A DNA stretch of 64,000 nucleotides from Hydrolagus colliei (Eukaryota). This document shows, piece after piece, positions 3,458 through 47,922 of the stretch. How positions within the stretch are numbered: position 1 is the stretch's first letter; each line of letters starts with the position of its first letter. The translations under genes were made by a program, and so were the position numbers. The stretch lies in assembly GCA_035084275.1 (NCBI GenBank), contig JAYJKW010000046.1, positions 1 to 64,000 on the forward strand. The letters run 5' to 3'. The notes beneath the pieces were generated by a model. It did no database searches. It was not told where the DNA came from and was given only the letters and a program-made list of their open reading frames with translations.

Positions 3458-3506
3458 CGTCAGTCACTGTCAGCATCGTCCCTTGTCCCCAGTAGGTCAA
3501 GATAGT
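3458..3506 (-). CDS. IGHJ: Cluster A JH segment (TILTYWGQGTMLTVTD) with 23-RSS at 3507-3545
   Basis: WGQG motif, GTAAG donor, CACAGTG-23-ACAATAACT. Confidence 0.93.
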
Positions 3507-3943
3507 CACAGTGCCTCAGTCAGTGGTCTGCTCACTACAATAACTTGCTGTGAGGAAGGTCACACAAACAATCTGTTATTCAAATGGTAAATTCCCACAA
3601 AACAAAACGCAGGGAACCGTCTCTCTCTGTCATGTTCCCAACACCACCAACAACAACAAACGCACAAAACAATCTGCGTTCGCCTGTTGTTAATCGCCTG
3701 TGTCTTGCTGTGTTCCCGACAACAAAACAGCCCCCATTGCGATTGTCGCCCACGGATTTGAGATTCAAAATACGACGTTTCATGTGTTTTTAAGTCAAAT
3801 CGGCTGAAAATTCCTCAGTGGTGGGTCTCCTCATACACACGTCAACTCTCCGAGCGTTAATTGGGATCCTCACAAGCCGGCGGTGGGAGAGATTGAGTAG
3901 GTTTTGCTGTTGGAGGGTTTTTGTATTGACAGTTAACGTTGTG

Positions 3944-3953
3944 ACTCCAGCTA
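3944..3953 (-). other. Cluster A D2 segment TAGCTGGAGT, 12/12 RSS (3916-3981)
   Basis: GGTTTTTGT-12-CGTTGTG and CACAGTG-12-ACACAAACC flank 10 nt. Confidence 0.9.
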
Positions 3954-4253
3954 CACAGTGATACACACTGTGACACAAACCTCAGGCTCAGGCTGAACCC
4001 ACAAATACTGTCCTGGCCGTTTCCGACAACTCCCTCCCTCCACAGACTCTACACACACACGCGCCGATAACAATCCCTCCGAGAAAACACACACAATAAT
4101 AATAAAATGGGCCGTTTTCAACCCAACGTTGGCTGTGTGTGGGGGACGCTGCCGTGCGCCATCGGCCGCTGTGACTGTAGCTTTGAGGACAGTGGCTTGC
4201 GGAGTCTGTGGCTGAGGTTTTTGTATGAGGAAGTGGCTGTATGTAGCATTGTG

Positions 4254-4265
4254 ACCCACTGTATA
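4254..4265 (-). other. Cluster A D1 segment TATACAGTGGGT, 5' 12-RSS and 3' 22-RSS (4216-4293)
   Basis: GGTTTTTGT-22-CATTGTG and CACAGTG-12-ACAAATACT; classic shark D1 layout. Confidence 0.92.
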
Positions 4266-4929
4266 CACAGTGATACAGTCCCATACAAATACTGGCATCG
4301 GTCTCTGCTCTCTCTACACTGGCTGCCAAAAGTCACTGAAATGGGCTATTTTAATGCCGGACAGAGTCTCAGATGATAATAATAATAATGATAATAATTC
4401 TTCTATTTGATATCGTGACTTTTTCCATCTTCCAGACTGTGTCTCAAAGCGTTTCACAGGAAATACTGCAAAGTGAATTGACTGTGTGTTTGTGGGAGAG
4501 CGAAACGCTGCAGCGTCCCCCACACACAGCTAACTGTGGGTTGAAAATGTCTGTGTGTGTGGGTGGGGGTGGGGGGGGGGGGACGCAATCCAACCTCAGT
4601 CCTGAAGAACCACACAGTCACTTACCGGCTGAAATGGCGGGATATCGCAGCACAGACGCTCGTTCACTCAATCCACTCCTCACTCCCTCCTCACTCCCCT
4701 CCACCGAACCGCCGGTCACTGTCTCGGTTTGGGGAATGAGACGAGGAATCCATTCCAATTGGAAGCCCGTGTTTTCCCTCCGTCCTTCCTTTCTGTGCTG
4801 CAGACACAGTGTTGACACCATGACTTGACTTCCCCCCCAGTCAGTCAGTCAGTCAGTCAGTCGAGGGTGGGACCTCTCTTCGCTTGTGTGAGTATTTGTA
4901 GGAGGCCAGCCCAGGTTCCTCTCACTGTG

Positions 4930-5234
4930 ACTCTCTGGCACAGTAATATATGGCGGTGTCGTGAACTGTCGGACTGTTGATGGTCAGATCGAAGATGTTG
5001 TTGGAAGTGTCTTTTCTGACAGTGACACGGCTTTCAATGCCGGGGGCGTAATACTCGCTGCCTTGAGCTGTGATACCACAGGAGCCATTCCAAGCCTTTC
5101 CCAGGAACCTGCCTGACCAGCTCATCCAGGTGCTGCTGAGAGTGAACCCGCTGGTTTTACAGGTGAGTCTCACGGCCGTGCCAGGCTTCCCGGTTAGAGT
5201 CGCCGCTGTGTCAGCACCACAGCGCCCTGGACGC
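4930..5234 (-). pseudogene. IGHV: Cluster A VH exon, frameshifted as assembled; 23-RSS at 4891-4929
   Basis: [27 protein letters not shown]; three single-base indels versus B V (net -1), all in short homopolymers, so possibly sequencing error. Confidence 0.8.
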
Positions 5235-5414
5235 CTGCGAGAAACGAGAAAAACGGGACCGAGGTGTTAATTACGGCGAGAACCGAGATCCGTGGACGCG
5301 GAGACAGAGACGGAGACAGAAAGATAGAGGGACACACAGAGAGACAGAGAGAGACACACACGCCACAGACGCACGGACGCAAGCGAGACTAGGGTAGGAC
5401 GAACGCCGACTCAC

Positions 5415-5460
5415 ATGAGAAGAGAGCCAGCAAGAGGCTGAGAGATATCAGGGACCTCAT
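5415..5460 (-). CDS. IGHV: Cluster A VH leader exon ([15 protein letters not shown])
   Basis: 46-nt ATG exon with GTGAGT donor, hydrophobic signal peptide, phase matches V exon. Confidence 0.92.
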
Positions 5461-5568
5461 GGCTTCCAGACAAAGTATCAGAGTTTGACGCCTGTTGTTT
5501 GAGCCACAACAGCCAAGAGACAGAGAGCTGTCGGGTGGACAGATGGGGTCTGTTACACACTGAGCTGC

Positions 5569-5635
5569 TATTTAACCAGGGGGGACGAGGCCAGGTGTCC
5601 TGGGAATGGACCAATGAGGTATCAGGGCTGATTGG
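5569..5635 (-). promoter_or_regulatory. VH promoter: TATA-like TTAAATA, E-box CACCTG, two CCAAT boxes
   Basis: Motifs at 5569-5575, 5592-5597, 5611-5615 and 5631-5635, at the same positions upstream of all five leaders; function inferred. Confidence 0.6.
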
Positions 5636-5804
5636 CGAGGGAGGGCTGAGGGAGGGGGGAGAATGTGGGGGGAGGGAGGAGGAGGGCGGGGGGTGGGGAG
5701 AGTCCACACCTCACATTCCCTCTGACCCCCGCACTGATCATTATTTACCTTCTGCCTGGACGGCAGCAAAGTTGATTAATACGAGTGTCAATAGTGGGAG
5801 CTTT

Positions 5805-6471: not shown

Positions 6472-8464
6472 GGATTTAATTCAATTTAACTAATTTAACT
6501 TAATTTTTTCGCGAGTTTTAAACGGTAGAGACATAATAATAATAAATAATAATAATCCTGGCGTTTGGATATCGCGGCTTCTCACGTCTTTTCGACCGCG
6601 TCTCGAAGCGCTTCACAGGATGGACCGTCGAGTGTAGTGGACTGTGTGTATGTGTCTGGGGACCCCAAATCTGATGATGTGAGAAGGGCTCAGTTCCTTA
6701 TCCACAGGAAACACCTGCTCTCTCTGCCACTGAATTAGAGTCTCTGCCTCTTAATACTGACCTGACCTGAAAGCCGACCACTGGAGACTGGTTAAAAATA
6801 CTCCAACGAACAGCTCAAGCTTTCAACACACACACACACACACTCACACACACACTGACCCACACATACACTCGCACACATTCACACTCACTCACAGACA
6901 CACACACACTCACTCGCACACACACACACACTCATACACACACACACACTCACACATACACACACACACACACTCACGCGCATTCACATTCACTCACAGT
7001 CACACACACTCACACACACACACTCACACGCATTCACATTCACTCACAGACACACTCACACACTCACTCGCACACACAAATACGCACACACACACACGAC
7101 ACATACTCACACACACACACTCAACACACACTCACACACAAACCACACAAACACACACAAATACGCACACACACACACTCCACACATACTCACACACACA
7201 CACACACCACCACACACATTCACACACAAACTCCACACACACTCACACACAAATACGCACGCACACACTCTACACATACTCACACACACACACCGACACA
7301 CTCACACACTCAACACACTCACACACACACGCCGAATAATAATCCCTCCAAAAAAGAACCCCAATAATAAAAAATCTGTCATTGGAATCAGTGAGTGTGT
7401 GTGTGTGTGTGTGTGTGTGAGGGGGTGGGGGGGGTGTAAACGCTGCCATGCGCAATCGGCTGCCGCGTTTCTCTCTCCCACAAATATATCCATGTACACA
7501 CAGTCACTACACTTGACGGTCTATCCCGCGAAGCGCTTCGAAACGCCGTCGAGGAGACGCGAAAACAAAAACGCCGCTGTATCCAATGCCGGGATCGGTG
7601 ATTATTAACATTGATGTGATTATTAGATTTCTATATTATTCTGGGATTATTGTTTCTCTCTGGGCCTCGTCACCGATTCGAGAGACTCGCGAGTGGACGG
7701 GAGACCATCAGGGGGTGGCTGGCGGGGAGCAGGGGGTTGAGCGGCGGCCACGGCTTGTCACAGGACACAGCTGGGATTGACCCCCACCACCCCGCCACCA
7801 ATACGTGTGTGCGTATTTGTGTGTGTGTGTGTGTGTGGAGTTTGCGTGTAAATGTGTTTGTGTGTGGAGTGTGTGTGTGAAGTGTGTGTGTGAATATACG
7901 TGTGTGAGTGTGTGTGTGAATATACGTGTGTGAGTGTGTGTGTGTGGAGTTTGCGTGTGAGTGTGTGTTGATTGTGTGAGGTGTNNNNNNNNNNNNNNNN
8001 NNNNNNNNNNNNNNNNNNNNNNNNNNNNNNNNNNNNNNNNNNNNNNNNNNNNNNNNNNNNNNNNNNNNNNNNNNNNNNNNNNNNNNNNNNNNNNNNNNNN
8101 NNNNNNNNNNNNNNNNNNNNNNNNNNNNTGTTGGAGTATTTTTAACCAGTCTCCAGTGGTCGGCTTTCAGTTCAGGTCAGTATTAAGAGGCAGAGACTCT
8201 AATTCAGTGACAGAGAGAGCAGGTGTTTCCTGTGGATAAGGAACTGAGCCCTTCTCACATCATCAGATTTGGGTCCCCAGACACATACACACAGTCACTA
8301 CACTCGACGGTCTATCCTGTGAAGCGCTCGAGACACGTCGATCAGACGTGAGGAGCCGCGATATCCAAAACGCCAAGATTATTATTATTTATAATTATTA
8401 TTATGTCTCTACGGTTTAGAACTCGCGAAAAATTAAGTTAAATTAGTTAAATTGAATTAAATCC
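6472..8464. repeat. Intercluster spacer: about 335-bp inverted repeat arms (6472-6805 and 8129-8464) around CA/TG tracts and a SINE tail
   Basis: CTGGAGACTGGTTAAAAATACTCC versus GGAGTATTTTTAACCAGTCTCCAG, and onward; recurs at about 19450-21640, 32045-32950 (partial), 44085-45830 and from 62360. Confidence 0.85.
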
Positions 8465-9067: not shown

Positions 9068-9398
9068 CTGAAAATAAAAATGAAAGATACGATTAATAAT
9101 TCAGCCTTTATGGGTGTGTGTGTGTGTGTCTGTCTGTCTGTCTATATGTGCATGTGTCTGTCTGTCTATGTGTGTGTGTGTGTGTATGTGGAGTAAGGAA
9201 ACTTGCCCAGATTTCGCCCTGACCTGACCTGCCTGGTTCGAACCACAGGTCTCTCATTCACGCTTGTAAGGCGAGTGAGTTCACTTGTGAATGAGTTCAC
9301 TCACTCACGAGTGGGTGAGTGAGTGAGTGAGTGAGTTCATTCGTTCGTTCGTGAGTCAGTGAGTGAGTTCACTCGTGAGTGAGTTGCCGTCTCCTCAC

Positions 9399-9529
9399 CT
9401 TAATCAGAGTGACGGTGGCGCTGTAGAACATACTCAGGAAGAAGAGGATGATGAAGGTGGAAGCTGTAGGCCAGAGGTTGCCACTTTCATCTGATGAGAA
9501 ACCCTCCAGCGTCACCTCGGCTGAGGAAT
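9399..9529 (-). CDS. IGHM: Cluster B TM1 exon
   Basis: DSSAEVTLEGFSSDESGNLWPTASTFIILFFLSMFYSATVTLIK, IgM transmembrane motif; AG/GT boundaries. Confidence 0.95.
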
Positions 9530-9559
9530 CTGTGCGGATACAACCCGGAGATATATAAT

Positions 9560-10065
9560 AATATTAATATTAATAATAATAATCCTGGCGTTTGATGTCG
9601 CCGCTTCTCGCGTCTCACCGGCCGCGTCTCAAAGCGCTTCGCGGGATAGACTGTCAAGTGTAGTGACTCTGTGGATATCCGTGGGGAGAGCGAAACGCGA
9701 TCGGAAGCCGATTGCGCACGGCAGCATACCGCCCCCCCCCCCCCCACCCCCGCCCCACACACACACACACACAGCCAACAGTGGGTTGAAAATGACCGAT
9801 TTTTATTAAGAAGGGATTATTATTAGGTGTGTATGCGTGTGTGTCTGTGTGAGTGTGTCTGTGTGTGTCTATGTGTGTGTTTGTGGTGACTGTATGTGTG
9901 TGTGGTGACTGTATGTGTGTGTGTGTGTGTGGTAAGGCAACTTGCCCCAAGGTTTCCCCCTGACCTGACCTGCGTGGATTCGAACACAGGTCTCTCTCTC
10001 TCTCTCTCTCACACATTGTAAGAGCGAGCGAGCGAGTGAGTGTCTCTAACCCACTGAGCTACAGG
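9560..10065 (-). mobile_element. tRNA-derived SINE directly upstream of TM1 acceptor
   Basis: TAGCTCAGTGGGTTAGAG head, GTTCGAATCC B-box, tail ends about 30 nt before TM1. Confidence 0.75.
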
Positions 10066-10166
10066 AGCTCCCACACACTGATGTCCCCCCCGTGTGACAG
10101 TGTCCAGAGCTACACACAGTCACTCCTCTCACAATCCTGCGGACTCCACAAAGTCATTACACATGT

Positions 10167-10197
<31 letters not shown>

Positions 10198-10389
10198 GGG
10201 GAGGGGGGGCGGCTGGGGTGGGGGGTGGGGGGGTGATCAGACACTGTCCCTCACAGTCGGGGTGAAGTTTCGTATCTTAGGGAACAATGACCTGGAGTTT
10301 ATTGTCGAAAATCACTTCAGATTCACTTCAAATAAAACGCTGACTTTACTCTGTGTGTGTAACAGCGATGGAGGGAAAGGGGGAGAAGT

Positions 10390-10951
10390 GTGTGTCTGTG
10401 TGTGAGTGTGTGTGTGTGAGCTTGGGTAATGGTGAATGTGAGTGTGTAGGGTAGTGTGGGGGGGGGGGGGGTGGAGCTTCGGTGAATGTGAGTGTGTTTC
10501 GGTGTGTGTGTGGGCTGGGTGTGTGTGAGTATGTGTGTGTTTGTATGATTCAGTGTGTGTGTGAGTATGTGTGTGAGTGTGCATTTGTGAGCTGAATGGT
10601 TATGAATGTGTGCAGGTCTGGGTTATTCTGAGTAGGTGTGAGTGTATGTGTGAGTGTGTGTGTGTGTATGTGAGTGAGTGTGTGTGAGTGTATTAGTGTG
10701 AGTGTGAGTGAGTGTATGAGTGTGAGTGTGAGTGAGTGTATGAGTGGGTGCTGGGTGGCTATGTTTGTGTGTATCTGCGGGACTGGATTATTGTGAGTAG
10801 GTGAGTGTGACTGTGTGTGTGTCAGTGATTGGGTGTGGAACTGGGCTTTTGTGAATAGTTGTGAGTATGTGTGTGAGTGTGAGTGTGTGTGAGTGGGTCT
10901 GGGTTTTTGTCGGAAGATGTGAATGTGTGTGTGTGTGAGCTGGTTAATTAT

Positions 10952-10982
<31 letters not shown>

Positions 10983-10985
10983 CAT
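10390..10985. repeat. Imperfect (TG)n/(TGAG)n tract, CH4-TM1 intron
   Basis: Visible dinucleotide tract; similar tracts at 6820-7330, 19800-20310, 20790-21290, 23700-24300, 36000-37100, 53450-54300, 59360-60430 and 62670-63870. Confidence 0.9.
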
Positions 10986-11174
10986 GTTTCGCTCCCCCAC
11001 GGATATATGTACAGTCACTACACTTTACAGCCTATTCTGTGAAGCGCTTTGAGACACAGTCTAGAAGACGTGAAAAGCCGCGATATCAAACGCCGGGATT
11101 ATTATTATTATTATTACTAATTAAATGAAACCTTCCCCTCTGGGACCTTGACTCGTTACTGACAATAAAGATTT

Positions 11175-11180
11175 TTTATT
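11175..11180 (-). terminator. Secretory-form poly(A) signal, cluster B
   Basis: AATAAA about 200 nt after tailpiece stop; equivalents at 24495, 37342, 53222(+) and 59170(+). Confidence 0.7.
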
Positions 11181-11375
11181 GGATTTACTTTCTTTCCATG
11201 ACTTCAAATTGGACAAGGTACTGGCAGGGTAGGGTAGGGTTGAGAAGAGTAGGGTAGGGGAGGGTAGGATAGGGCAGGGTAGGTACGGGAGGGGAGGGGA
11301 GGGGAGAGTAGGGGAGGGGAGGAGAGGGGAAGGTGCAACAAAAGGAAGAGCGAAATTGGTAAGGCGAGTTGGGAC

Positions 11376-11770
11376 TCATTGACAAGTCTTGACTGTGTCC
11401 ACCAGGACGAGGGAAACGTTTACGAAAGTGGGTTTACCGCTGGTCTTGTTGACGTATCTGGTCAGGGTCTTGGACGAGTTGAAGGATCGGTGCCCCACCA
11501 CACAGGAGTAGGTGTTCCCTTTGTCCCAGTCTCCGGCCGAGACGGACAACATACTGTACATGGAGTAGTTGTGACTTGTGTTGGCTGCCATGGCCTCGGT
11601 GTTGGTGTATTGACTGGCATCGATCGCCTGGTCGTTGACTGCCCACTCCACGAAGATCTCTTTGGGAGCGAATTCCTTCACCAGGCATGTGAGGGTGACC
11701 CACTGATGGGCGGACAGTTCTTCAGGCGACGGGAGTAGGAGATACACTGAAGGCCTATTGGTGTCCTGGT
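11376..11770 (-). CDS. IGHM: Cluster B CH4 plus secretory tailpiece (type 1)
   Basis: PSVYLLLPS..VTLTCLVKEFAP..YSCVVGH..SGKPTFVNVSLVLVDTVKTCQ*; internal G|GTAAA donor at 11437 for TM splicing. Confidence 0.96.
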
Positions 11771-12035
11771 CTGTTGGAAGGAATACAGTCCATATCATCA
11801 ACGACAACAGGAACAGGAACATGAACTTGACACTTGTACAGACAGAGCCTTTCACGTCATGGATGTAGGGTGGAGGCGAGGTTGTGGAGGGCTTTGGGGG
11901 TGTGGGAGGCTGGAGGGAAGGGAAGGGAGGGGATTAGGAGTTGGAGGCGTAGGCGTAGGACTTCCATCGATTGAGAATGTGGGGGGGTGGGGGCACTGAA
12001 TGGCCGAAGGCTCGCTCTTCTGCCAATGGTGGGAC

Positions 12036-12250
12036 GGGTTGGGTTGGGTTGAGTTGAGTTGGATTGAGTTGAGTTGAGTTGGGTTGGGTTGGGTTGGATT
12101 GGGTTGGGTTGGGTTGAGTTGCATTGGGTTGCGTTGAGTTGGGTTGAGTTGGGTTGAGTTGGGATGAGTTGGGTTGGGTTGGGTTGGGTAGGGTTGAGGT
12201 GGGTTGGATTGAGTTGAGTTGAGTTGGGATGAGTTGGGATGAGTTGGGGT
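12036..12250 (+). repeat. (GGGTT/GAGTT)n pentamer array in CH3-CH4 intron
   Basis: Visible; second copy at about 25334-25530; absent from D/E/F. Confidence 0.9.
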
Positions 12251-12369
12251 GGGTGGGTGTTGAGCAGAGGGAGGGAGGGGAAGGGAGGGGCAGGTTGGTA
12301 AAGGTGGGGGGAGATAGGAGCTCAGTTGCAATAAGCCAAATAACTCATTTCTTGTGCTGAATCTCTCAC

Positions 12370-12663
12370 CTGGCTTCTTAGATATCGTTCCTCTCTTGGG
12401 CGTCAACATATCGACATGGTTGGCGACGCATTCAAACTCTTTGCCTCCATTCCATTCGCGTGTGGAGACGTTTAATTCACTGGTCACTCGCTGAGCAGAT
12501 CGACTCTCTCGTGCTGACTGTCGAGCCATGTGTCCTTGAGTCCAAGTCACGTTGACCCCGCTGGGAGCGTCGGTCACGACGCAGGTCAGTGTGACCGTGT
12601 CTCCCAACAACACCTGCTTCGGTGAAGGCGGCAGGAAAGAGACCTTGACCTCGCCCAGACATT
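12370..12663 (-). CDS. IGHM: Cluster B CH3 exon (type 1)
   Basis: ECLGEVKV..VTLTCVV..VNVTW..EFECVANH..ISKKP; 294 nt, phase 1/1. Confidence 0.95.
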
Positions 12664-12779
12664 CTAGACCGAGGGGAGAAGAAAAACAAAGATGACCACA
12701 ACAAAAAGACAAGCATGAGAGAGTGTGTGTGTGAGAGCGAGATCTCTGACCACTGAGCTACAGGAGACCCCAACCCTAC

Positions 12780-13097
12780 CTGGGTTCCAATTGGTGATGT
12801 TCTTGATGATGAGGGTCTGGGAAGGGTCATGGGTGACTCTGCAGGAATAAACCACGTCCCACCTCCAGTCTTTGGCCGGGATGGTCAGTCGGCTGTCAGT
12901 ACTGAAGTTCCCATTGTCTTTCAGCGAAGGGGAGGTCTCAATGCCTGAGGTTACGGCCTTCCCGTCCTTCAGCCAGTCAACGATGAGCTTGTCCGGTCTG
13001 AAGCCAGAGACTGAGCAGAGAAGGGTGGCCTGGTTGATGAGGGCGATGTCTTCGGGGGACGTCTGTGTGAGGAGCACAACTGGGGGCGACGGTTGAA
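12780..13097 (-). CDS. IGHM: Cluster B CH2 exon
   Basis: ATLLCSVSGFRP..VDWLKDGK..YSCRVTH; 318 nt. Confidence 0.95.
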
Positions 13098-13581
13098 CTA
13101 CTACAACAACAAAATTAGATTTGTACAGATAGAGCCTTTCGTGTCTAGTAGACATCCCAAGGAGCTGAACAGTTAGGTGGGGGGGAAAGTTAGGAAGGGG
13201 GGAGAGTTAGGAGGGGAGGAGAGTTAGGAGGGCAGCAGAAGGCACGGTCGAAGAGGAAGGTGTTGATACCGGCCTTGAAGGAGGAAAGGGAGGAAGCGAG
13301 TGGGAGGGTTTGCGGGACGGAGTTCCACGGCGTGGGGGGGGGGGGGGGGGGGCAGAGAGACACAGAGAGAGGCTGAAAGCCCGGCCACCGATGGTAGGGC
13401 AGTTAGTGTCAGTGGAGGTGGAGCAGGCCAGAGACTGCTGAGCGGAGGGGACGGGCGGGCAGATAGGGAGACAGCAGGTCGGAGAGATAAGCGGGGACAA
13501 GTCAGTGAATGTCCACACGAGGGCAACGTTGTCGTTGTTGTTGTCTGATCGCCTCTGTATCTTTGGAAACACAAAACTAAC

Positions 13582-13890
13582 CTGGGAAACAGATGTCCCC
13601 GTCTAACCAGATGCTGCTTTTGACCTGACAACAGAGATTGAAGATGTCCACCTGAGATGCCTCGATGGTCAGCTGGCTGCTGGCTGTGTAGAAACCGGCC
13701 TTGCTTAGCACCGGGGGGTAACTCTTGACTTGGCCTTTGTTGGCGATGGGATGTCCTTTGGAGGTCCAGCTGAAAGTGGCCGGCTCGGGGGAGAAGTCGG
13801 CGGCCAGACACCCGAACGTGAGTCGGCCTTCGAGGGGGGGCGATCCGCAGGTGGGCAAGAGGGCGTAAAGACTGGGAGCTGTAGGGGTGG
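13582..13890 (-). CDS. IGHM: Cluster B CH1 exon
   Basis: ATPTAPSLYALLPTC..FGCLAADFSP..TFSW..YTASSQLTI..LCCQV; 309 nt; shark IgM CH1-like. Confidence 0.95.
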
Positions 13891-14007
13891 CTGGAAACGC
13901 GAAGAGAGCAAAGTTAGACCCCCCCAACCAGGTTTCCGCCCTTGTCCAATTGGGTCAGACGCCACAGATACAGTGGACTAGACCTGCCACACTCGTAAAT
14001 ACACACA

Positions 14008-16561: not shown

Positions 16562-16609
16562 CGTCAGTCACTGTCAGCATGGTCCCTTGACCCCAGTAGC
16601 CAAGATCGT
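16562..16609 (-). CDS. IGHJ: Cluster B JH (DLGYWGQGTMLTVTD), 23-RSS at 16610-16648
   Basis: WGQG motif, GTAAG donor, heptamer-23-nonamer. Confidence 0.95.
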
Positions 16610-37528: not shown

Positions 37529-37914
37529 TCATTGGCAGCCATTGACGTTGTCCATCAGGACGAGAGAGGGATTTACGAAACAGGGTTTACCGCTGAACTT
37601 GTTGATTGATCTGGTCTTGGGCTGGTCCATGGATTCGTGTCTGACCACACAGGAGTACGTGCTCCCCTGCTCCCACTCGGAGCTCGAGATGGACAACAGA
37701 CTGTACATGGAGTGTTTGAGTCCGGTCTCGGTTCCCATGACCTCCGTGTTGGAGTAGTCGCACTCGCTCATGGCCTGGCCGTTGACCGTCCACTCCACCA
37801 GGATCTCCTTGGGGGCGAAGTCCTTCACCAGGCACGTGAGGTTGACCGATTGGTGAGAGTAGAGCTCCTCGGCCAACAGGAGGAGGAGATACACTGAAGG
37901 CTGCTCTGGGGAGA
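37529..37914 (-). CDS. IGHM: Cluster D CH4 plus secretory tail (type 2)
   Basis: VSPEQPSVY..LTCLVKDFAP..YSCVVRH..SGKPCFVNPSLVLMDNVNGCQ*. Confidence 0.93.
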
Positions 37915-38470
37915 CTGTGGGGAGAGTCGACACTCGAATCAACGGCGGCGACAAAACGGACGACGCTCGTAGAGACACTTTCACCTCAGGAGGACCTCCC
38001 ATGGCGAGGGACAGTCACTGTGTCAGATCCGAGTGATGGTAAGACGGGACATGGGGTGGGGTGAGGGTGAGGGGAGGGGAGGGGAGGGGAGGGGAGAAAT
38101 CTCTCCCCTCCCCTCCCCTCACCCTCCCAATCGGGAGTTGCCGATGGGTGCATCGAAGAGGAGAGTCTTGAGGTGGGACTCGAAGGGAAGCCAGTGAGGG
38201 AGGGAGGGGACGAGTGAGCGAGGTGGAGGGAATGTGGGTTGTGGGGAGGGAGGGAGGGAGGGAGGGTGGGAAGGAAGTGAGTGAGGGAGTGAGGGGGCGA
38301 GTGATCGAGGTGGAGGGAATGTGGGATGTAGGTAGGGAGGGAAGGAAGGGAGGGAGCTTGTGAGCGTGCGAGGGAGGGAGCGGGAGCAGGTTGGGATAAG
38401 GAGTTCCAGTTGCCAATAAGTCAAAGAAACCATTCCTTGGTCCCGAAAACCCCTGGCGTCCTTTGCTCAC

Positions 38471-38782
38471 CTTCGCTCTTGGATATCTCTGCGCGCTTGG
38501 GAGAGGCCATGGTTGGGTGGCTGGCCTGGCAGGCGTATCTCTTCCTACTAGCCCAGTCTTGGGCGGGAATATCCAACTCGCTGACCGCTCGCCGAGCCGA
38601 GCGATTCTCGTGCGTCGACTGTATGGCCGTCTGTCCTCGAGTCCAACTCACGGTGACGTCGCTGGGGGCGTTGGTCACGACGCAGGTCAGGGTGACGGTG
38701 GCCTGCGTCAGTAGCTGCCTCGCTGAGGGCGGCAGCAGAGACACGCAGACTTCTGGCACGGCAGGCGGACAATCGGGAGATC
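38471..38782 (-). CDS. IGHM: Cluster D CH3 (type 2); acceptor at 38782 or in-frame alternative at 38752
   Basis: (GSPDCPPAVP)EVCVSLLPPS..VTLTCVV..YACQASH..ISKSE; GTGAGC donor. Confidence 0.88.
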
Positions 38783-39270
38783 CTGCGGTTCGAATCCGGG
38801 CAGATCAGGTCAGGGTCCAGGGCAGGGCAGGGCAGGGGGAGACCCTGGGAAAGTTTCGGTACTCTTCACCCTCAACACACACACACGTACGCACACACAC
38901 GCAACACACACGTAGCACACACAACACACAATGTGAGTGTGTGTGTGGGGGGGGGGGCTGGGTGATTCTAATTGTGCGTATGTGTGTGGGGGACTGGGNN
39001 NNNNNNNNNNNNNNNNNNNNNNNNNNNNNNNNNNNNNNNNNNNNNNNNNNNNNNNNNNNNNNNNNNNNNNNNNNNNNNNNNNNNNNNNNNNNNNNNNNNN
39101 NNNNNNNNNNNNNNNNNNNNNNNNNNNNNNNNNNNNNNNNNNNNNNNNNNNNNNNNNNNNNNNNNNNNNNTGTGAGTGTGTGTGGGGACAGGATTATTGT
39201 GAGTGTGTGTGTGTCTGCGAGAGAGATCGAGTGCTCTGTACCACTGAGCTACAGGAGACCCCAACCCTAC

Positions 39271-39570
39271 CTGGGCTCCAATTGGTGATGTTTATGATGA
39301 TGAGGGTCTGGGAGGGGTCATGGGTGACTTTGCAGGCATAAATCACGTCTTTCGTCCAGTCTGTGGCCGGGATGGTCAGTCGGCTGTCAGTACTGAAGTT
39401 CCCATTGTCATTGAGCGAAGCGGAGGTCTCAATGCCTGAGGCCAAGGCCTTCCCGTCCTTCAGCCAGTCAACCCTGAGCTTGTCTGGACTGAAGCCAGAG
39501 ACTGAGCAGAGAAGCGTGGCCTGGTTGGCGAAGGCGATGTCTTTGGGGGACGTCTGTGTGAGGGGCACAA
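39271..39570 (-). CDS. IGHM: Cluster D CH2 (usual acceptor missing; next in-frame AG assumed)
   Basis: VVPLTQTSPKDIAFANQATLLCSV..YACKVTH..NWSP; 5' boundary inferred. Confidence 0.82.
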
Positions 39571-40075
39571 CTGGGGGCGACGGCGACAACAACAAGGACA
39601 AAATTAGACACGCACAGACAGGGGCTTTCGCGTCAGGAGGACGTCCCAAGGCGCTGGACAGTCACTGCTTCAGAACCAAGCTGAGGACAATGTGATGGGG
39701 TGGGGGAGGAGAGGGGGTGTGGGGTGTGGTGTGGGGGGGAGTCAGGTGGAGGGAGTGGGGGGTGGGGGAGATTAGGATTTGCGGAAGGGCCCATCGAAGA
39801 GGAGGGTCTTGAGGCGAGACTTGAAGGAGTCCAGTGAGGGAGAGAGGGAGGGAGCGAGGCGTAGGGACTGAGGGATGGAGTTCCCGAGTTTGCGGGGAGG
39901 TAGGCGGACGGATAGAGTGGCTGAAGCCTGGCCCATTAGGCTCACCGTCATACGAGCGTAAGCATTAGGAGCAGAAGTAGGCCATTCAGCCCCTCGAGCC
40001 TCGCGTGAAAGGCTCTACGCAGGGGGTAATGTTGTTGTCTGATTGCCTCTGTACCTTTGGAAACACAAAACTAAC

Positions 40076-40384
40076 CTGGGAAAGTGACATTCTCGCCTGA
40101 CCAGCTGCTGCTTTTGACCTGACAACAGAGATTGGAGATGTCCACCTGAGATGCCTGGATGGTCAGCTGGCTGCTGGCTGTGTAGAGACCGGCCTTGCTG
40201 AGCACCGAGGGGTAAATCTTGATTTGGCCTTCGTTGGCGATGGGACGTCCATTGGAGGTCCAGCTGAAAGTGGCCGGCTCGGGGGCGTAGTCGGCGGCCA
40301 GACACCCGAACGTGAGTCGGCCTGCGGGGGTGGGCGATTCGCAGGTGGGCCGGAGGGTGTAAAAACTGGGAGCTCTAGGGGTGT
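40076..40384 (-). CDS. IGHM: Cluster D CH1 (type 2)
   Basis: DTPRAPSFYTLRPTC..GCLAADYAP..LCCQVKSSSWSGENVTFP; 309 nt. Confidence 0.93.
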
Positions 40385-40499
40385 CTGGAAACGCGAAGAG
40401 AGCAAAGTTAGACCCCACCCACCAGGTTTCCGCCCTTCTCCAATTGGGTAAGACGCCACAGATACACTGGACTAGACCTGCCGCACGCGTCATTACACC

Positions 40500-40895
40500 C
40501 ACAGGAGTAGGCCATTCAGCCCCTCGAGCCCGCCCCTCCCATTCAATAAGATCACGGCTGATCTTCTAATCTAACTCCCCCGACCCCCCGCCTTGTCCCC
40601 ATCTCCCCTTAATCCCTTTATCCTCAAGAAATCTCATCAATCTCAGTCTTGAATATGTCCAGGAACTGACTGAGCATCTACAGCCCTTTGGGGTAGAGAA
40701 TTCCATCCATTCACTATCCTCTTGAGCGAAGATGTTTTTCCTAAAATCAGTGTGAAAATGCTGACCCCTCATCTTCAGACTGTGACTCTCTAGTTATGGT
40801 TTCTCCAACCAGGGGACACAGTCTCCCACTGTCCACTGTGTCAATGCCCCTTAATAATCTGATACATTTCCATAAGATCACCTCTGATTCTTCCA
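40500..40895 (-). mobile_element. CR1 LINE 3' fragment (D)
   Basis: Orthologous intron copy. Confidence 0.72.
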
Positions 40896-41569
40896 ATCAG
40901 GTCTCACACTCAATCACAGCCTGAACCCTGACATCTCAATCGCAAACTGTTTCCGTCCAATAAACCACGGGTTACTAAACACTCTCCTTCTGTCGGCCAG
41001 ACGCTCTCTCTCCCTCTCTCTCCCTGTGTCCGTTTCTCTCGCTCTCGGTGGCTGGCCAGCCAGCTCACACTCTGTCCTTCCACGTCACAACACGGAGCCT
41101 TCAATCTGCGTTTCGCCCACAAACGTACAGTCACTACACTTGACAGTCTATTCTGTGAAGCGCTTTGAGACACAGTCGATCGGATGTGAAAAGCCGCCAC
41201 GTCTAACTCAAGGATTGTTCTCATTACTAACACCTGGATCTCTTGTACAGAGTTTACGCTGTGTGACGTAAACTCTGTACATAACTCAAACATTAAATAA
41301 TAATCATTGCATTTGATATCGCGCTTTTCACATTTTATCAACGTCTCAAAAGCTGTGCACAGAATACACTGAATTGACAATATATTTTGTGCGAGAGACG
41401 AACGCGGCAGCCAATTGCGCACAGCAGCTTCCCCACAAATAGCCGTGGATTGAAAATAACCAATTTTATTCCAGTGGGAATTTGTTTTTGGACGGATTAT
41501 TATTGAGCGAGTGAGTGAGCGCGTTCTTTCGCTCATTCTTTCGTTCGTTCATTCGCAAATGTTTCTTAC

Positions 41570-41624
41570 CGTCAGTCACTGTCAGCCTGGTCCCTTGTCC
41601 CAGAAGTTAAGAACTCCAGTTGTG
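41570..41624 (-). pseudogene. IGHJ: Cluster D germline-joined D(D)J with D1-type 12-RSS (41625-41652)
   Basis: CAC-AACTGGAGT(D2)-TCTTAACTTCTGGGACAAGGG..GACG|GTAAG; in-frame TAA as assembled; open (TTGVLNFWGQGTRLTVTD) if one G is restored. Confidence 0.85.
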
Positions 41625-42298
41625 CACAGTGATACAGTCCCATACAAATACTGGCCTCGGTCTCTGCTCTCTCTACACTGGCTGCCAAAAGTCACTGAAA
41701 TGGGCTATTTTAATGCCGGACAGAGTCTCAGATAATAATAATAACAACAATAATAATTATTCTATTTGATATCGTGACTTTTCGCGTCTTCCTGACTGTC
41801 TCAACGCGTTTCACAGGAAATACTGTAAAGTGAATTGACTGTGTGTTTGTGGGAGAGCGAAACGCGGCATCGTCCCACACACAGCCAACTGTGGGTTGAA
41901 AATGTCTGTGTGGGTGGGGGGTGGGGGTGGGGGGGGGGGTGGAACGCAATCCAACCTCAGTCCTGAGGAACCACACAGTCACTTACCGGCTGAAATGGCG
42001 GGATATCGCAGCACAGACTCGTTCACTCACTCCCCTCCTCACTCCCCTCCTCAGTCCCCTCCTCACTCCCCTCCATCGAACCGCCGGTCACTGTCTTAGT
42101 TTGGGGAATGAGACGAGGAATCCATTCCAATTCGAAGCCCGTGTTTCCCCCCGTCCTTCCTTTCTGTGCTGCAGACACAGTGTTGACACCATGACTTGAC
42201 TTCCCCCCAGTCAGTCAGTCAGTCAGTCAGTCGAGGGTGGGACCTCTCTTCGCTTGTGTGAGTATTTGTAGGAGGCCAGCCAGGTTCCTCTCACTGTG

Positions 42299-42606
42299 CT
42301 AGGCGCTGGCACAGTAATATATGGCGGTGCCGTGAACTGTCGGACTGTTGATGATCAGATCGAAGATGTTGTTGGAAGTGTCTTTGATGACAGTGACACG
42401 GCTTTCAATGCCGGGCGCGTAAGAATTGAAGGATGAGCTGTAATAATACAGGAGCCATTCCAAGCCTTTCCCAGGAACCTGCCTGACCCAGTGCATGTAA
42501 TAGCTGCTGAGATCAAACCCGCTGGTTGTACAGGTGAGTCTCACGGCCGTGCCAGGCTTCCCGGTTAGAGTCGCCGGCTGTGTCAGCATCACAGCGCCCT
42601 GGACGC
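42299..42606 (-). CDS. IGHV: Cluster D VH exon ending CASA* at the RSS; RSS at 42261-42298 with 22-nt spacer
   Basis: Open frame to terminal TAG; conserved DTA changed to GTA. Confidence 0.88.
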
Positions 42607-42795
42607 CTGCGAGAAACGAGAAAAACGGGACCCGAGGTTAATTGCGGCGAGAACCGAGATCCGTGGACGCCGAGACAGAGAGAGAGACAGAGGCAGAGAC
42701 AGAGAGAATCAAAGAGGCAGAGACAGAGAGAGACACACGGACGCACGGACGCAAGCGAAAACAGCGAGACTAGGGTAGGACGAACGCCGACTCAC

Positions 42796-42841
42796 ATGAG
42801 AAGAGAGCCAGCAAGAGGCTGAGAGATATCAGGGACCTCAT
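42796..42841 (-). CDS. IGHV: Cluster D leader exon
   Basis: 46 nt, ATG to GTGAGT. Confidence 0.92.
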
Positions 42842-45800
42842 GGCTTCCCAGACAAAGTATCAGAGTTTGACGCGCCCTGTTTGTTTGAGCCACAACAGCC
42901 GAGAGACAGAGAGCTGTCGGGTGGACAGATGGGGTCTGTTACACACTGAGCTGCTATTTAACGAGGGGGGACGAGGCCAGGTGTCTGGGGAACGGACCAA
43001 TGAGGTATCAGGGCTGATTGGGGAGGAAGGGAGGGGAGGGGGTGAAGGAGGTGGGGGGGCGGGGGGAGAGTCACACCTCACATTCCCTCTGACCCCCGCA
43101 CTGATAATTAATTTACCTTCTGCCTGGATGGCAGCAAAGTTCGTATTAATTAATACGAGTGTCAATAGTGGGAGCTTTCTGTGGCTCGGTGGTTGGAGCA
43201 ATCGCTCACTCACTCACCCTCTCTCTCTCTCTCTCGCTCGCTCGCCTTGCAAACATGAGATATCTGTGTGTGTTCAAATCCAGGCAGATCAGGTCACGTC
43301 AGGGCGAAAGCTTGGGCAAGTTTCCTTACTCCACGCACACAAACACACAAACAGACACAGAGACACACGCGCACACACACACACACGCCTAATAATAATG
43401 CCTCCAAACACCACACCCACTATAACAAAAATAAAATAATATAAATTGGTCATTTTCAAACCACTGTTGGCTGTGTGTGTGGGGAGGGAGGGAGGGGGGG
43501 TGGGGACGCTGCTGTGTGCAATTGGCTCCCAGATCGTGTTTCGCTCTCCCCACAAAACATATATACAATCACTACACTTGACAGTCTATTCTCTGAAGTG
43601 CTTTGAGACGTGGATAAGAGGTGATGAGCCGCGATATCAAACGCGAGGATTATTATTATTATTATTACATACACTCAAACATACATACACTGTACACACA
43701 AAAACACATACACACAAACACACACACACACACACAGCCGCGTGTGTCCGCCTCACAAAGCCACTCTGGCTTTGATGGAACGTGGAGCGAAATTATCGTT
43801 TCATTTTCTGTTCGAATCGACATCACTGATGGTTCTCCCTCCGGAAGGCGTTTTGTGACCTGAACAAGGTATTTACTGGCTGAACGTGAGGACGCACAGT
43901 CTGGCGGTCGGTCGCTCGGCGACGTTTCTATTTCGGTGAAGAAACGAGACGTTTGACGCGTTTCGAACGACGCCAAATAACGGAACGATATAAATATGAC
44001 AACAGCGTTTCATCCGTTCGAGGATTTCTGGGAATTTCTAGAAATAAGATATTTTCTTCCACGTCTGCGCCTTCGAACGATAATTATAATCCTGGCGTTT
44101 GGATATCGCGGCTTCTCACGTCTTATCGACCGTGTCTCGACGCGCTTCACAGGATAGACCGTCGAGTGTAGTGACTGTGGGTCCCCACACATACAGTGTC
44201 TGGGGACCCAAATCTGATGATGTGAGAAGGGCTCAGTTCCTTATCCACAGGAAACACCTGCTCTCTCTGCCACTGAATTAGAGTCTCTGCCTCTTAATAC
44301 TGACCTGACCTGAAAGCCGACCACTGGAGACTGGTTAAAAATACTCCAACAAACAGCTCAAGCTTTCAACACACACACACTCTCACACACACTCACACTA
44401 GCACACACACACACACACTCACACGCATTCACATTCACTCACACACACACTCACTCGCACACACAAATACGCACACACACNNNNNNNNNNNNNNNNNNNN
44501 NNNNNNNNNNNNNNNNNNNNNNNNNNNNNNNNNNNNNNNNNNNNNNNNNNNNNNNNNNNNNNNNNNNNNNNNNNNNNNNNNNNNNNNNNNNNNNNNNNNN
44601 NNNNNNNNNNNNNNNNNNNNNNNNNNNNNNNNNNNNNNNNNNNNNNNNNNNNNNNNNNNNNNNNNNGGGGGGGGTCAATCCCAGCTGCGTCCTGTGACAA
44701 GCCGTGCCCGCCGCTCGAACCCCCTGCTCCCCGCCAGCCACCCCCTGATGGTCTCCCGTCCACTCGCGAGTCTCTCGAATCGGTGACGAGGCCCAGAGAG
44801 AAACAATAATCCCCCGAATAATATAGAAATCTAATAATCGCATTAATGTTAATAATCACCGATCCGGCATTGGATACGGCGGCGTTTTGTTTTCGCGTCT
44901 CGTCGACCGGGTCTCGAAGCGCTTCGCGGGATAGACCGTCAAGCGCAGTGACTGTGTGTACATGGATATATTTGTGGGAGAGAGGAACGCGGCAGCCGAT
45001 TCCGCACGACAGCGTCACCCCCACGCACCCCCCCCCCCACACACACACACTCATAGATTGAAATGACAGATTTTTTATTATTGTGTGTGTGTGAGTATGT
45101 GTATATCGTGTGTGCGTATTTGTGTTGTGTGTGGAGTNNNNNNNNNNNNNNNNNNNNNNNNNNNNNNNNNNNNNNNNNNNNNNNNNNNNNNNNNNNNNNN
45201 NNNNNNNNNNNNNNNNNNNNNNNNNNNNNNNNNNNNNNNNNNNNNNNNNNNNNNNNNNNNNNNNNNNNNNNTGTGTGTCTGTTTGAGTGTGTGTGTGAGT
45301 ACGTGTATGAGTGTGTGTGTTGAGTATGTGTGTGCGTATTTGTGCGTGAGTGAGCGTGTGACTGAGTGCGTGTGTGTGTGTGCGAGTGAGTGCGTGTGTG
45401 TGTGTCTGTGTGAGTGAATGTGAATACGTGTGAGTGTGTGTGTGTGTATGTGAGTGTGTGTGTGAGTGTGTGTGTGTGTTGAAAGCTTGAGCTGTTTGTT
45501 GGAGTATTTTTAATCAGTCTCCAGTGGTCGGCTTTCAGGTCAGGTCAGTATTAAGAGGCAGAGACTCTAATTCAGTGGCAGAGAGAGCAGGTGTTTCTTG
45601 TGGATAAGGAACTGAGCCCTTCTCACATCATCAGATTTGGGTCCCCAGACACATACACACAGTCACTACACTCGACGGTCTATCCTGTGAAGCGCTTCGA
45701 GACACGGTCGATAAGACGGGAGAAGCCGCGATATCCAAACGCCAGGATTATTATTCTTTATTATGATTATGTCTCTACCGTTTAAAACTCGCGAAACAAT

Positions 45801-46879
45801 TAACTTAAATTAGTTAAATTTAATTAAATCTGCTTAATTTCGCTTCACGTTCCTTTAAAGCCGGAGATGTTTTGTGAAGCGGACACACGCGGCTGTGTGT
45901 GTGTGTGTGTGTGTGTGAGTGTGTCTGTGTGTATGTGTTTATTTGTGTGTACAGTGTATGTATGTTTGAGTGTATGTTTGTAATAATAATAACAATAATA
46001 ATCCTCGCGTTTGATATCGCGGCTCATCACCTCTTATCCGCGTCTCAAAGCGCTTCACAGAATAGACTGTCAAGTGTAGTGACTGTATATATGTTTTGTG
46101 CGGAGAGCGAAACGCGATCGGCAGCCGATTGTACACAGCAGCCCCCCCCCCCACCCCCCCCCCCCCACACACACAGCCAACAGTCGGTTGAATATGACCA
46201 ATTTTTATTATTTTATTTCTATTATAGTGGGTTTGTTTTTGGAGGCATTATTATTAGGCGTGTGTTTGTCTGTCTGTCTGTGTGTGTGTCTCTGTGTACG
46301 TGTGTGTGTGGCTCTGTGTGCGTGTGTGTCTGTGTGTGTCTATCAGTGTGTGTGGCTGTGTGCGTGGAGTAAGGAAACTTGCCCATGGTTTCGCCCTGAC
46401 CTGACTTGATCTGCCTGGATTTCAAACACACAGATCTCTCATGCTTGCAAGGCGAGCGAGAGAGAGAGTGAATGCTCTAACCACCGAGCCACAGAAAGCT
46501 CCCACTATTGACACTCATATTTATTAATATGAACTTTGCTGCCGTCCAGGCAGAAGGTAAATTAATGATCAGTGCCGGGGTCAGAGGGAATGTGAGGTGT
46601 GACTCTCACCCCCCCCCCCCTCCCTCCCTGTCCCCCCTCCCACCTCCTTCACCCCCCCCCCCTCCCTCCCTGTCCCCCCTCCCTGCCTCCGCCCCCCCCT
46701 CCCCAATCAGCCCTGATACCTCATTGGTCCGTTCCCCAGACACCTGGCCTCGTCCCCCTCGTTAAGTAGCAGCTCAGTGTGTAACAGACCCCATCTGTCC
46801 ACCCGACAGCTCTCTGTCTCTCGGCTGTTGTGGCTCAAACAAACAGGGCGTCAAACTCTGATACTTTGTCTGGGAAGCC

Positions 46880-46925
46880 ATGAGGTCCCTGATATCTCTC
46901 AGCCTCTTGCTGGCTCTCTTCTCAT
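46880..46925 (+). CDS. IGHV: Cluster E leader exon ([15 protein letters not shown])
   Basis: 46 nt, GTGAGT donor. Confidence 0.93.
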
Positions 46926-47101
46926 GTGAGTCGGCGTTCGTCCTACCCTAGTCTCGCTTGCGTCCGTGCGTGTGTGTCTCTCTCTCTGTCTCTCTCTGTC
47001 TCTGTCTCTCTCTGTCTCCGTCTCTCTCTCTGTCTCCGCGTCCACGGATCTCGGTTCTCGCCGTAATTAACCTCGGGTCCCGTTTTTCTCGTTTCTCGCA
47101 G

Positions 47102-47433
47102 GCGTCCAGGGCGCTTGGATGCTGACACAGCCGGCGACTCTAACCGGGAAGCCTGGCACGGCCGTGAGACTCACCTGTAAAACCAGCGGTTTCGATCTCA
47201 GCGGCTGGTACATAGACTGGGTCAGGCAGGTTCCTGGGAAAGGCTTGGAATGGCTCCTGCGTTATCACACTCCAACCGCTAGCAACACTGCTTATGCACC
47301 CGGCATTCAAAGCCGTGTCACTGTCATCAAAGAGAATTCCAACAACATCTGCGATCTGATCATCAACAGTCCGACAGTTCACGACACCGCCATATATTAC
47401 TGTATCAGAGGATATACAGTGGACCACTACGGT
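47102..47433 (+). CDS. IGHV: Cluster E germline-joined V-D1-D2 exon, in frame; D2-type 12-RSS at 47434-47461
   Basis: ..DTAIYYCIRGYTVDHYG then CACAGTG-12-ACAAAAACC; no V 23-RSS. Confidence 0.93.
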
Positions 47434-47873
47434 CACAGTGTTAACTGTCAATACAAAAACCCTCCAACAGAAAAACCTTCTCAATCTCTCCCACCGCCGG
47501 CTTGTGAGGGTCCCAATTAACGCTCGGAGAGTTGACGTGTGTATGAGGAGACCCACCACTGAGGAATTTTCAGCCGATTTGACTTAAAAACACATAAAAC
47601 GTCGAATTTTGAATCTCAAATACATGGGCGACAATCGCAATGGGGGCTGTTTTGTTGTCGGGAACACAGCAAGACACAGGCGTTTAACACCAGGCGAACG
47701 CAGATTGTTCTGTGCGGTTGTTGTTGTTGTTGTTGTTGGGAACATGACAGAGAGAGACGGTTTCCTGCGTTTTGTTTTGGGGGAAATTTACCATTTGGAA
47801 TAACAGATTGTTTGTGTGACCTGTCCTCACAGCAAGTTATTGTAGTGAGCAGACCACTGACTGAGGCACTGTG

Positions 47874-47922
47874 ACATATCTTCACAACTGGGCACAAGGG
47901 ACCATGCTGACAGTGACTGACG
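47874..47922 (+). CDS. IGHJ: Cluster E JH (TYLHNWAQGTMLTVTD), 23-RSS at 47835-47873
   Basis: AGTTATTGT-23-CACTGTG; GTAAG donor; WAQG instead of WGQG. Confidence 0.92.

Follow-up and report, generated by a model that had tools for sequence, protein, structure and literature searches.

Unjoined and partially joined immunoglobulin M heavy-chain clusters, the latter probably of germline RAG origin, lie side by side in an assembled locus of the spotted ratfish

The DNA analyzed here, a stretch of 64,000 nucleotides (nt) from contig JAYJKW010000046.1 of the Hydrolagus colliei assembly GCA_035084275.1 (positions 1 to 64,000 of the forward strand; hereafter "the window"), contains five neighboring immunoglobulin heavy-chain clusters, labeled A to E, with A–D on the minus strand and E on the plus strand. 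A cluster of this kind is a self-contained V-D1-D2-J-Cmu gene, in which variable (V), diversity (D1 and D2), and joining (J) segments precede the constant region (Cmu); three RAG-mediated joins are normally needed to complete it in a B cell. On the respective strands, V segments end in YYCAR followed by a recombination signal sequence (RSS) consisting of the heptamer CACAGTG, a 23-nt spacer, and a nonamer, and J segments read WGQGTMLTVTD followed by the splice-site motif GTAAG. Four Cmu exons follow downstream of J, with a secretory tail (GKPTFVNVSLVLVDTVKTCQ in B) and a transmembrane (TM) exon, the whole cluster fitting within about 13 kb. This minicluster layout is complete in B, C, and D; A is truncated by the window edge, and no TM exon for E was found between its Cmu4 exon and a further Cmu copy designated F, an interval that includes the gaps 54304–54458 and 54831–55030. 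In a protein search, the spliced Cmu of cluster B matched the cDNA-derived entry "immunoglobulin heavy chain [Hydrolagus colliei]" at 99% identity over 435 amino acids (aa), and the V region of that cDNA is nearly identical to the V of cluster B. Because both the Cmu and the V of B match the H. colliei cDNA, the window is, to judge from these matches, an immunoglobulin M (IgM) heavy-chain minicluster array of the spotted ratfish or of a very close chimaerid. The features, with RSSs designated by spacer length, are as follows.

2–846, minus strand: cluster A Cmu; Cmu1 524–846; start of Cmu2 2–42, truncated by the window edge
3458–5460, minus strand: cluster A, V to J, unjoined; leader 5415–5460; V exon 4930–5234; V-RSS23 4891–4929
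4254–4265, minus strand: cluster A D1, TATACAGTGGGT; RSS12 4266–4293; RSS22 4216–4253
3944–3953, minus strand: cluster A D2, TAGCTGGAGT; RSS12 3954–3981; RSS12 3916–3943
3458–3506, minus strand: cluster A J; J-RSS23 3507–3545
9396–13891, minus strand: cluster B constant region, type 1; Cmu1 13583–13891; Cmu2 12775–13095; Cmu3 about 12369–12664
11376–11770, minus strand: cluster B Cmu4 with secretory tail; TM exon 9396–9491
16562–18524, minus strand: cluster B, V to J, unjoined; leader 18479–18524; V exon 18002–18307; V-RSS23 17963–18001
17363–17374, minus strand: cluster B D1; RSS12 17375–17402; RSS22 17325–17362
17050–17059, minus strand: cluster B D2, TAACTGGAGT; RSS12 17060–17087; RSS12 17022–17049
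16562–16609, minus strand: cluster B J; J-RSS23 16610–16648
22736–27183, minus strand: cluster C constant region, type 1; Cmu1 26875–27183; Cmu2 26058–26378; Cmu3 25652–25947
24673–25067, minus strand: cluster C Cmu4; TM exon 22736–22831
29486–31077, minus strand: cluster C, V to J, state V/D1D2/J; leader 31032–31077; V exon 30512–30817; V-RSS23 30473–30511
29917–29930, minus strand: cluster C fused D1D2; D1 5′ RSS12 29931–29958; D2 3′ RSS12 29889–29916
29486–29533, minus strand: cluster C J; J-RSS23 29534–29572
35159–40385, minus strand: cluster D constant region, type 2, no stops; Cmu1 40077–40385; Cmu2 39266–39583; Cmu3 38445–38783
37529–37915, minus strand: cluster D Cmu4; TM exon 35159–35254; gap 38999–39170 lies in the Cmu2–Cmu3 intron
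41570–42841, minus strand: cluster D, V to J, state V/D1D2J; leader 42796–42841; V exon 42299–42606, ending in TGTGCCAGCGCCTAG
41570–41624, minus strand: cluster D fused D1D2J; D1 5′ RSS12 41625–41652; V-RSS with 22-nt spacer 42261–42298
44481–44666, no strand: assembly gap and orientation switch, from minus-strand clusters A–D to plus-strand E and F
46880–47922, plus strand: cluster E, V to J, state VD1D2/J; leader 46880–46925; V-D1-D2 exon 47102–47433
up to 47433, plus strand: cluster E junction; V to 47410; GA 47411–47412; D1 TATACAGTGG 47413–47422; ACC 47423–47425; D2 ACTACGGT 47426–47433
47874–47922, plus strand: cluster E J, reading WAQG; RSS12 47434–47461; J-RSS23 47835–47873
50247–53049, plus strand: cluster E constant region, type 2, open; Cmu1 50247–50558; Cmu2 about 51003–51347; Cmu3 51830–52168
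52666–53049, plus strand: cluster E Cmu4 with secretory tail
56253–61268, plus strand: F, an extra type-2 Cmu copy; Cmu1 56253–56561; Cmu2 57011–57333; Cmu3 57774–58112; Cmu4 58624–59007
61173–61268, plus strand: the only plus-strand TM exon, after F

RSSs were scored as strong when the heptamer matched at 6 or more of 7 positions and the nonamer at 7 or more of 9, with a spacer of 12 or 22/23 nt. Sixteen such sites occur in the window (0.28 expected from first-order Markov simulations), all of them at V, D, or J borders. The bare heptamer CACAGTG occurs at the frequency expected by chance (25 observed, 28.5 expected), so that only a full RSS in context is informative. Clusters A and B retain all six RSSs in the order V-RSS23 / RSS12-D1-RSS22 / RSS12-D2-RSS12 / RSS23-J, and are thus unjoined (V/D1/D2/J); the IgM clusters of the horned shark have the same layout (V-23 / 12-D1-22 / 12-D2-12 / 23-J-Cmu). 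The RSSs that remain in C, D, and E fit the spacer pattern of A and B. Cluster C, in the state V/D1D2/J, is without the D1 3′ RSS, the spacer DNA between D1 and D2, and the D2 5′ RSS; cluster D, V/D1D2J, has lost everything between D1 and J; and cluster E, VD1D2/J, has lost everything between V and D2.

Pairwise comparison with cluster B recovers these losses as discrete deletions: approximately B 17369–17071 in C, B 17374–16594 in D (replaced by 23 nt), and B 18004–17052 in E (replaced by 21 nt). In all three comparisons the flanks are collinear up to the junctions, and the deletion end points fall within a few nt of coding/RSS borders. Within the window, full-length D1–D2 intersegment DNA is present in A and B only; the V–D1 intersegment DNA is present in A–D and missing from E, and the D2–J DNA is present in A, B, C, and E and missing from D. 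The RSS pairs lost are each 12/23-compatible, namely D1 3′ (22) with D2 5′ (12), D2 3′ (12) with J (23), and V (23) with D1 5′ (12). RSS scan, direct reading, and collinearity with B thus bear out the cluster labels and joining states that an earlier note on this DNA had assigned to A–E, as well as its statement that the joins respect 12/23 pairing; the end points it gave for the series, 3458 and 47922, are the last J bases of clusters A and E.

The unjoined clusters allow the joins to be read against germline segments. In A and B, V ends in TGTGCCAGAGAGT and the 12-nt D1 is TATACAGTGGGT; D2 is TAGCTGGAGT in A and TAACTGGAGT in B, and the J of A begins with ACTATCTTGACC. Read in gene sense, the fused D1D2 of cluster C is TATACA/ACTACGGT. 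The junction of cluster E consists of V ending in TGTATCAGAG (AGAG end), GA, TATACAGTGG, ACC, and ACTACGGT, and that of cluster D of CACA, ACTGGAGT, and then TCTTAACTTCTGGG, the D1D2J feature being written CACA / ACTGGAGT / TCTTAACTTCTGGGACAAGGG. Relative to its germline form, D1 is trimmed by 2 nt in E, 6 nt in C, and 8–9 nt in D, leaving remnants of 10, 6, and at most 4 nt, respectively. J has also lost 4 nt at the join in D and V about 3 nt in E, where 2–3 unexplained extra nt occur at each of the two joins. The joins of C, D, and E retain no trace of a heptamer. Imprecision of this kind—trimming with few added bases—is a signature of V(D)J coding joints. The earlier note had described each junction as precise at the RSS borders; this does not hold, as the joins are trimmed in all three clusters and E carries extra bases. 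The RSSs that were retained do abut coding sequence as they do in A and B, with the D1 flank of cluster D as the single exception. The CACAAC that follows the D1 heptamer in D was considered as the remnant heptamer of a signal or hybrid joint and rejected, as the next bases are D2 coding sequence and not RSS spacer.

Each joined cluster differs by 4–12% from every other cluster of the window in its V–J region. The V–J regions are about equidistant from one another (89–92% identity across upstream region, leader, and V; 93–95% in the V–D1 spacer; about 96% in the D2–J spacer), and parsimony-informative splits, with 2–6 conflicting sites per segment, carry too little signal to group the clusters. 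The number of joins required is at least three (one D1–D2, one D2–J, and one V–D1) and at most five. Cluster E keeps D1 bases (GTGG) that are missing from C and D, so its D–D join cannot derive from either of theirs; C and D could share one ACA/ACT breakpoint, or could have reached the same breakpoint twice. The earlier proposal of at least three independent germline RAG events therefore stands insofar as at least three different joins are needed, and does not insofar as the D1–D2 joins of C, D, and E are not separable, the identities among the clusters being star-like.

The clusters differ in coding state. B, C, and E have open frames in leader and V, and the reading frame of B is intact. Cluster A has 1-nt deletions in framework regions 1 and 2 of V and another just upstream of the ATG, along with at least two frameshifts in Cmu1. 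In cluster D, V is open but a TAG stands directly at its coding end, the V-RSS spacer is 22 nt, and J is one G short of TGGGGA (the WGQG motif), so that splicing brings a TAA into frame; were all four Gs present, the frame would read TTGVLNFWGQG. The single-base losses of A and D all fall in short homopolymers (of 2–3 bases in A); B, C, and E have none over approximately 1.7 kb of coding sequence each. The V and constant region of cluster C are open, and the heptamer of its D1 5′ RSS12 is CATAGTG, with a mutated third base. The third heptamer base is essential for RAG cleavage, so the V-to-DD join in C is probably disabled. Cluster E has an RSS12 of perfect consensus (CACAGTG-12-ACAAAAACC) facing a good J RSS23, a VDD frame that is open and in phase with J (YYCIRGYTVDHYG), and an open Cmu frame, and by these features looks intact.

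A protein search with the V-D-D exon of E returned Callorhinchus and shark V regions only, with no Hydrolagus entry, and exact-product look-ups with the open frames of the E V-D-D exon and the B Cmu4 exon returned no record in other assemblies. Approximately 190 bp upstream of the leader ATG are almost identical in all five clusters (5461–5650, 18525–18715, 31078–31270, 42842–43030, and 46690–46879 in A to E, respectively) and include a CCAAT motif and a TTAAATA box (TTAAGTA in E). The immunoglobulin octamer ATGCAAAT, allowing one mismatch, was not found within 340 bp upstream of any of the five leaders.

Taken together, these observations suggest that C, D, and E are most probably germline-joined immunoglobulin clusters, made by RAG, inherited, and since diverged. 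Following the model of Lee et al. (2000; PMC2193156), a germ-line cell would have undergone RAG cleavage at RSS pairs that satisfy the 12/23 rule, losing the signal ends together with the DNA between them. End-joining would then have sealed the coding ends, which, as is usual, would have been trimmed and have gained a few bases; the joined products, passed on by inheritance, would have diverged as separate paralogues. The joined clusters carry private changes: the CATAGTG heptamer in C, the 22-nt spacer and terminal TAG of V in D, and WAQG in the J of E. The window showed neither signal joints nor excision products that had been re-inserted.

Several points weigh against this interpretation. 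It is drawn from a single assembly. The head-to-head placement of D and E rests on scaffolding across the gap 44481–44666 and not on read-through. In cluster D, the flank beside the intact D1 5′ RSS12 (41621–41624) is CACA where the germline sequence is TATACA; a simple one-step model does not predict this anomaly, as a border that was not cut should stay unchanged. It could stem from mutation at a later time, from an open-and-shut event, or from an ancestral D1 that was already different. Cluster A is a probable pseudogene, a call that is provisional given that assembly error or a poorly polished contig is possible; the freedom of B, C, and E from such losses favors real decay in A. The pseudogene call for D is likewise provisional, since its homopolymer loss could be an assembly error. 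Lastly, dN/dS between the Cmu of D and E is 0.95, giving no sign of purifying selection on the type-2 clusters.

One alternative is that the joined junctions are somatic rearrangements from lymphocytes (of spleen, thymus, or blood) that were taken into the consensus, the germline loci themselves being unjoined. Shark thymus contains partial IgH rearrangements of just this form in abundance, and spleen has them too (PMC2435157); the DNA assembled here may have come from such a tissue. However, somatic junctions differ between cells, and so should not win the consensus. Moreover, given their 4–12% divergence, none of the joined clusters is simply a rearranged A or B, and the private changes in retained RSSs and J are those expected after a long separate history. 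The window holds no unjoined locus whose flanks are identical to those of a joined cluster (the closest are 88–96% identical in the V–J region), and cluster C lies with cluster B on a single gap-free contig of 23 kb (16039–38998). Because junctions vary by cell, the clusters are this divergent, and each carries private changes, a somatic origin is improbable.

Alternatively, the clusters could be assembly artefacts, produced by chimaeric or collapsed contigs among tandem paralogues of 88–99% similarity, in which case the series or its order would be unreal. There are ten runs of N in the 64 kb; the orientation flips exactly at one of them, next to a contig of just 471 bp (44667–45137), and B and C are 98–99% identical downstream of Cmu1, and hence hard to assemble. 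The flanks of five gaps were compared with gap-free paralogous copies for order and orientation. Four are collinear: those of gap 7985–8128 with the B/C spacer (blocks 338 bp apart there), of gap 15910–16038 with A (124 bp), of gap 38999–39170 with the Cmu2–Cmu3 intron of E (205 bp), and of gap 45138–45271 with A (338 bp). At the fifth, 44481–44666, the orientation flips, as 44080–44480 matches A 6546–6941 directly and 44667–45083 matches A 7788–7362 in inverted orientation. The sequences upstream of D and E are arranged as inverted arms (about 42311–44480 and 47403–45374) that are 86–91% identical, a divergence that argues against a fold-back artefact at this point.

No gap falls within any exon or V-to-J interval, so the continuity of the reading frames is unaffected. 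The V–J regions of D and E lie in the contigs 39171–44480 and 45272–54303, respectively, and every joined junction sits well inside its contig, at least 2 kb from the nearest gap. Misassembly, furthermore, cannot make coding joints that are without both RSSs and have a trimmed D, and the D1 and D2 flanks share no long k-mer. At most, an artefact could change how the clusters are ordered and oriented; their joined states would not be touched, and this alternative as a whole is improbable. The description in the earlier note of one tandem array, with C, D, and E within about 18 kb, needs the qualifications that E is inverted and that the step from D to E depends on a scaffold gap.

Ordinary deletions, through replication slippage or breaks not made by RAG, might instead have removed the intersegment DNA. 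Indels are common in these repeat-rich spacers, though nothing specific points to such an origin here. All five end-point pairs map to within a few nt of a coding/RSS border, and each deletion takes exactly one 12-RSS and one 22/23-RSS; we estimate, without simulation, that a random origin of this pattern in a 1.5-kb interval is vanishingly unlikely, and ordinary deletion is accordingly a very poor candidate. Least credible of all is the converse idea, old in the field and discussed and rejected previously (PMC2193156; PMC3308330), that the joined forms are ancestral and were split later by insertion of RSS-flanked DNA: the D segments of the joined clusters are truncated, whereas A and B have them in full (D1 of 10, 6, and at most 4 nt, vs. 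12), and splitting would have to recreate the missing D bases identically.

The origin preferred here for C, D, and E, germline joining by RAG, is also the one accepted for joined immunoglobulin genes of sharks (PMC2193156). Germline IgM clusters in the states VD-J, VD-DJ, and VDJ are known and make up about half of the horned-shark clusters (PMC5192425; PMC4279169; PMC3308330); VD and VDD germline genes are mentioned by Lee et al., according to whom joined heavy-chain junctions are too varied to interpret (PMC2193156). The ratfish clusters add to this known kind; they introduce no new mechanism and leave the known picture unchanged. As to whether such an adjacent series had already been described, a question raised by the earlier note, no description of germline IgM clusters in the states V/DD/J or V/DDJ, or of an assembled series of neighbors, was found in a literature search that did not cover the primary ratfish, horned-shark, and skate reports; clusters of the joined kind are, by contrast, well known.

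A close parallel is the IgM system of Heterodontus francisci (Kokubu et al., 1988, as summarized in PMC3308330, PMC5192425, and PMC2193156), in which clusters joined as VD-J, VDD, and VDJ are likewise mixed with unjoined ones within one isotype and the joining is attributed to germline recombination. The states named in these reviews start from V (VD-J, VD-DJ, VDJ), whereas ratfish C and D keep V unjoined; and the horned-shark clusters came from separate phage clones, whereas in this holocephalan window several states are physically linked in one assembly. For H. colliei itself, a VDJ germline-joined IgM gene (Hyco-gjH) is on record (Rast et al., 1998, as cited in PMC12227049). It shares species, isotype, and a germline-joined V region with the present clusters, but is, according to that citation, fully joined, unlike all five clusters of the window.

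Other comparisons come from the nurse shark. Among its NS4 light-chain genes, joined and split members also coexist; their junctions are RAG-like, and multiple independent germline events were inferred (PMC2193156). However, these are VJ genes up to 99% identical to their split relatives, such that phylogeny could count five events, whereas the ratfish clusters are 88–96% identical and about equidistant. IgNAR type III has a germline D1–D2 fusion with V and J unjoined, as in cluster C, and a restricted diversity in the third complementarity-determining region (CDR3); it is of another isotype, with three D segments, and is expressed in neonates (PMC4622739). Ratfish C has a mutated V-side heptamer. 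The nurse shark cluster IgM1gj is an example of a joined cluster that is functional and expressed. In shark IgH miniloci, segments recombine somatically within one cluster and in no fixed order, giving V-DD-J, V-DDJ, and VDD-J alike (Malecek et al., 2008; PMC2435157). These configurations are identical to those of C, D, and E, but the nurse shark states are per-cell events in thymocytes and B cells, whereas the ratfish states belong to distinct, diverged paralogues in an assembly.

Germline-joined antibody genes are the main evidence that RAG has acted on the vertebrate germ line, reshaping antigen-receptor loci over evolution, and most heavy-chain examples came from isolated phage clones. Here, the unjoined, D–D, DD–J, and V–DD states are adjacent in an assembled holocephalan locus, along with unjoined references, so that the junctions can be read base by base. 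The series would show that germline events did not proceed in order from D–J to V–DJ. From what each cluster retains, E is predicted to need one join, VDD to J (through its perfect RSS12 and an RSS23), and to have a CDR3 (beginning CIRGYTVDHYG) that is almost wholly germline-encoded; D is predicted to need only V to DDJ, with a stop present as assembled; and C is predicted to need two joins, the heptamer for its V join being crippled. A more ambitious reading, which we regard as speculative and on balance unlikely, is that the three neighbors are the record of RAG having acted repeatedly, in germ cells, on one accessible chromosomal neighborhood and in no fixed joining order, a germline counterpart to the unordered joining of somatic cells in sharks, and that at least E is still a working gene whose nearly germline-encoded CDR3, carried on the second Cmu type, constitutes an innate-like antibody lineage in chimaeras. 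Cluster-specific sequences make it possible to ask whether pre-joined clusters are expressed, whether they supply "innate-like" antibodies early in life, or whether they are decaying by-products.

The constant regions fall into two types, with type 1 in A, B, and C and type 2 in D, E, and F. Within type 1, the Cmu exons of B and C are 99% identical, and the truncated Cmu1 of A is 95% identical. At the nucleotide level, type 2 is about 90% identical to type 1 in Cmu1 and Cmu2 and about 75% in Cmu3 and Cmu4; its whole constant region has 65% aa identity to the H. colliei cDNA, and nothing in the protein database matches it more closely. B and C differ by 5–12% from upstream of V to the middle of the J–Cmu1 intron, vs. 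98–99% identity, introns included, from Cmu1 to beyond the TM exon; the switch lies at about 14000–14500 in B and about 27300–27800 in C. This change in identity implies that the V–J part and the constant part have different histories, and points to recent gene conversion or unequal crossing-over that would have homogenized the constant regions of B and C and not their V–J parts. The type of D2 is independent of the type of constant region, with ACTGGAGT in B and D and ACTACGGT in C and E.

Between the two types, dN exceeds dS in Cmu1 (0.132/0.035 for B–D and 0.107/0.064 for B–E), and dN/dS is about 0.4–0.6 in Cmu3 and Cmu4. F arose within a direct duplication of about 6 kb (49547–54221 and 55560–60067), which gives E a second constant region. 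Neither V nor J precedes F, which is interrupted by a frameshift in Cmu2 and by two stops, one each in Cmu3 and Cmu4; the Cmu frames of D and E remain open.

A dispersed repeat of about 140 bp is also found throughout the window. Rfam and tRNA scans of the window gave no match, this repeat included; it is probably a short interspersed element or a miniature inverted-repeat transposable element. Thirty-one copies of at least 90 bp, 63–81% identical, occur on both strands (e.g., 17463–17702, 4354–4577, 41713–41930, 53283–53438, 37135–37284, and 59230–59369), and copies are present inside the V–D1 and D1–D2 intersegment DNA and the J–C introns as well.

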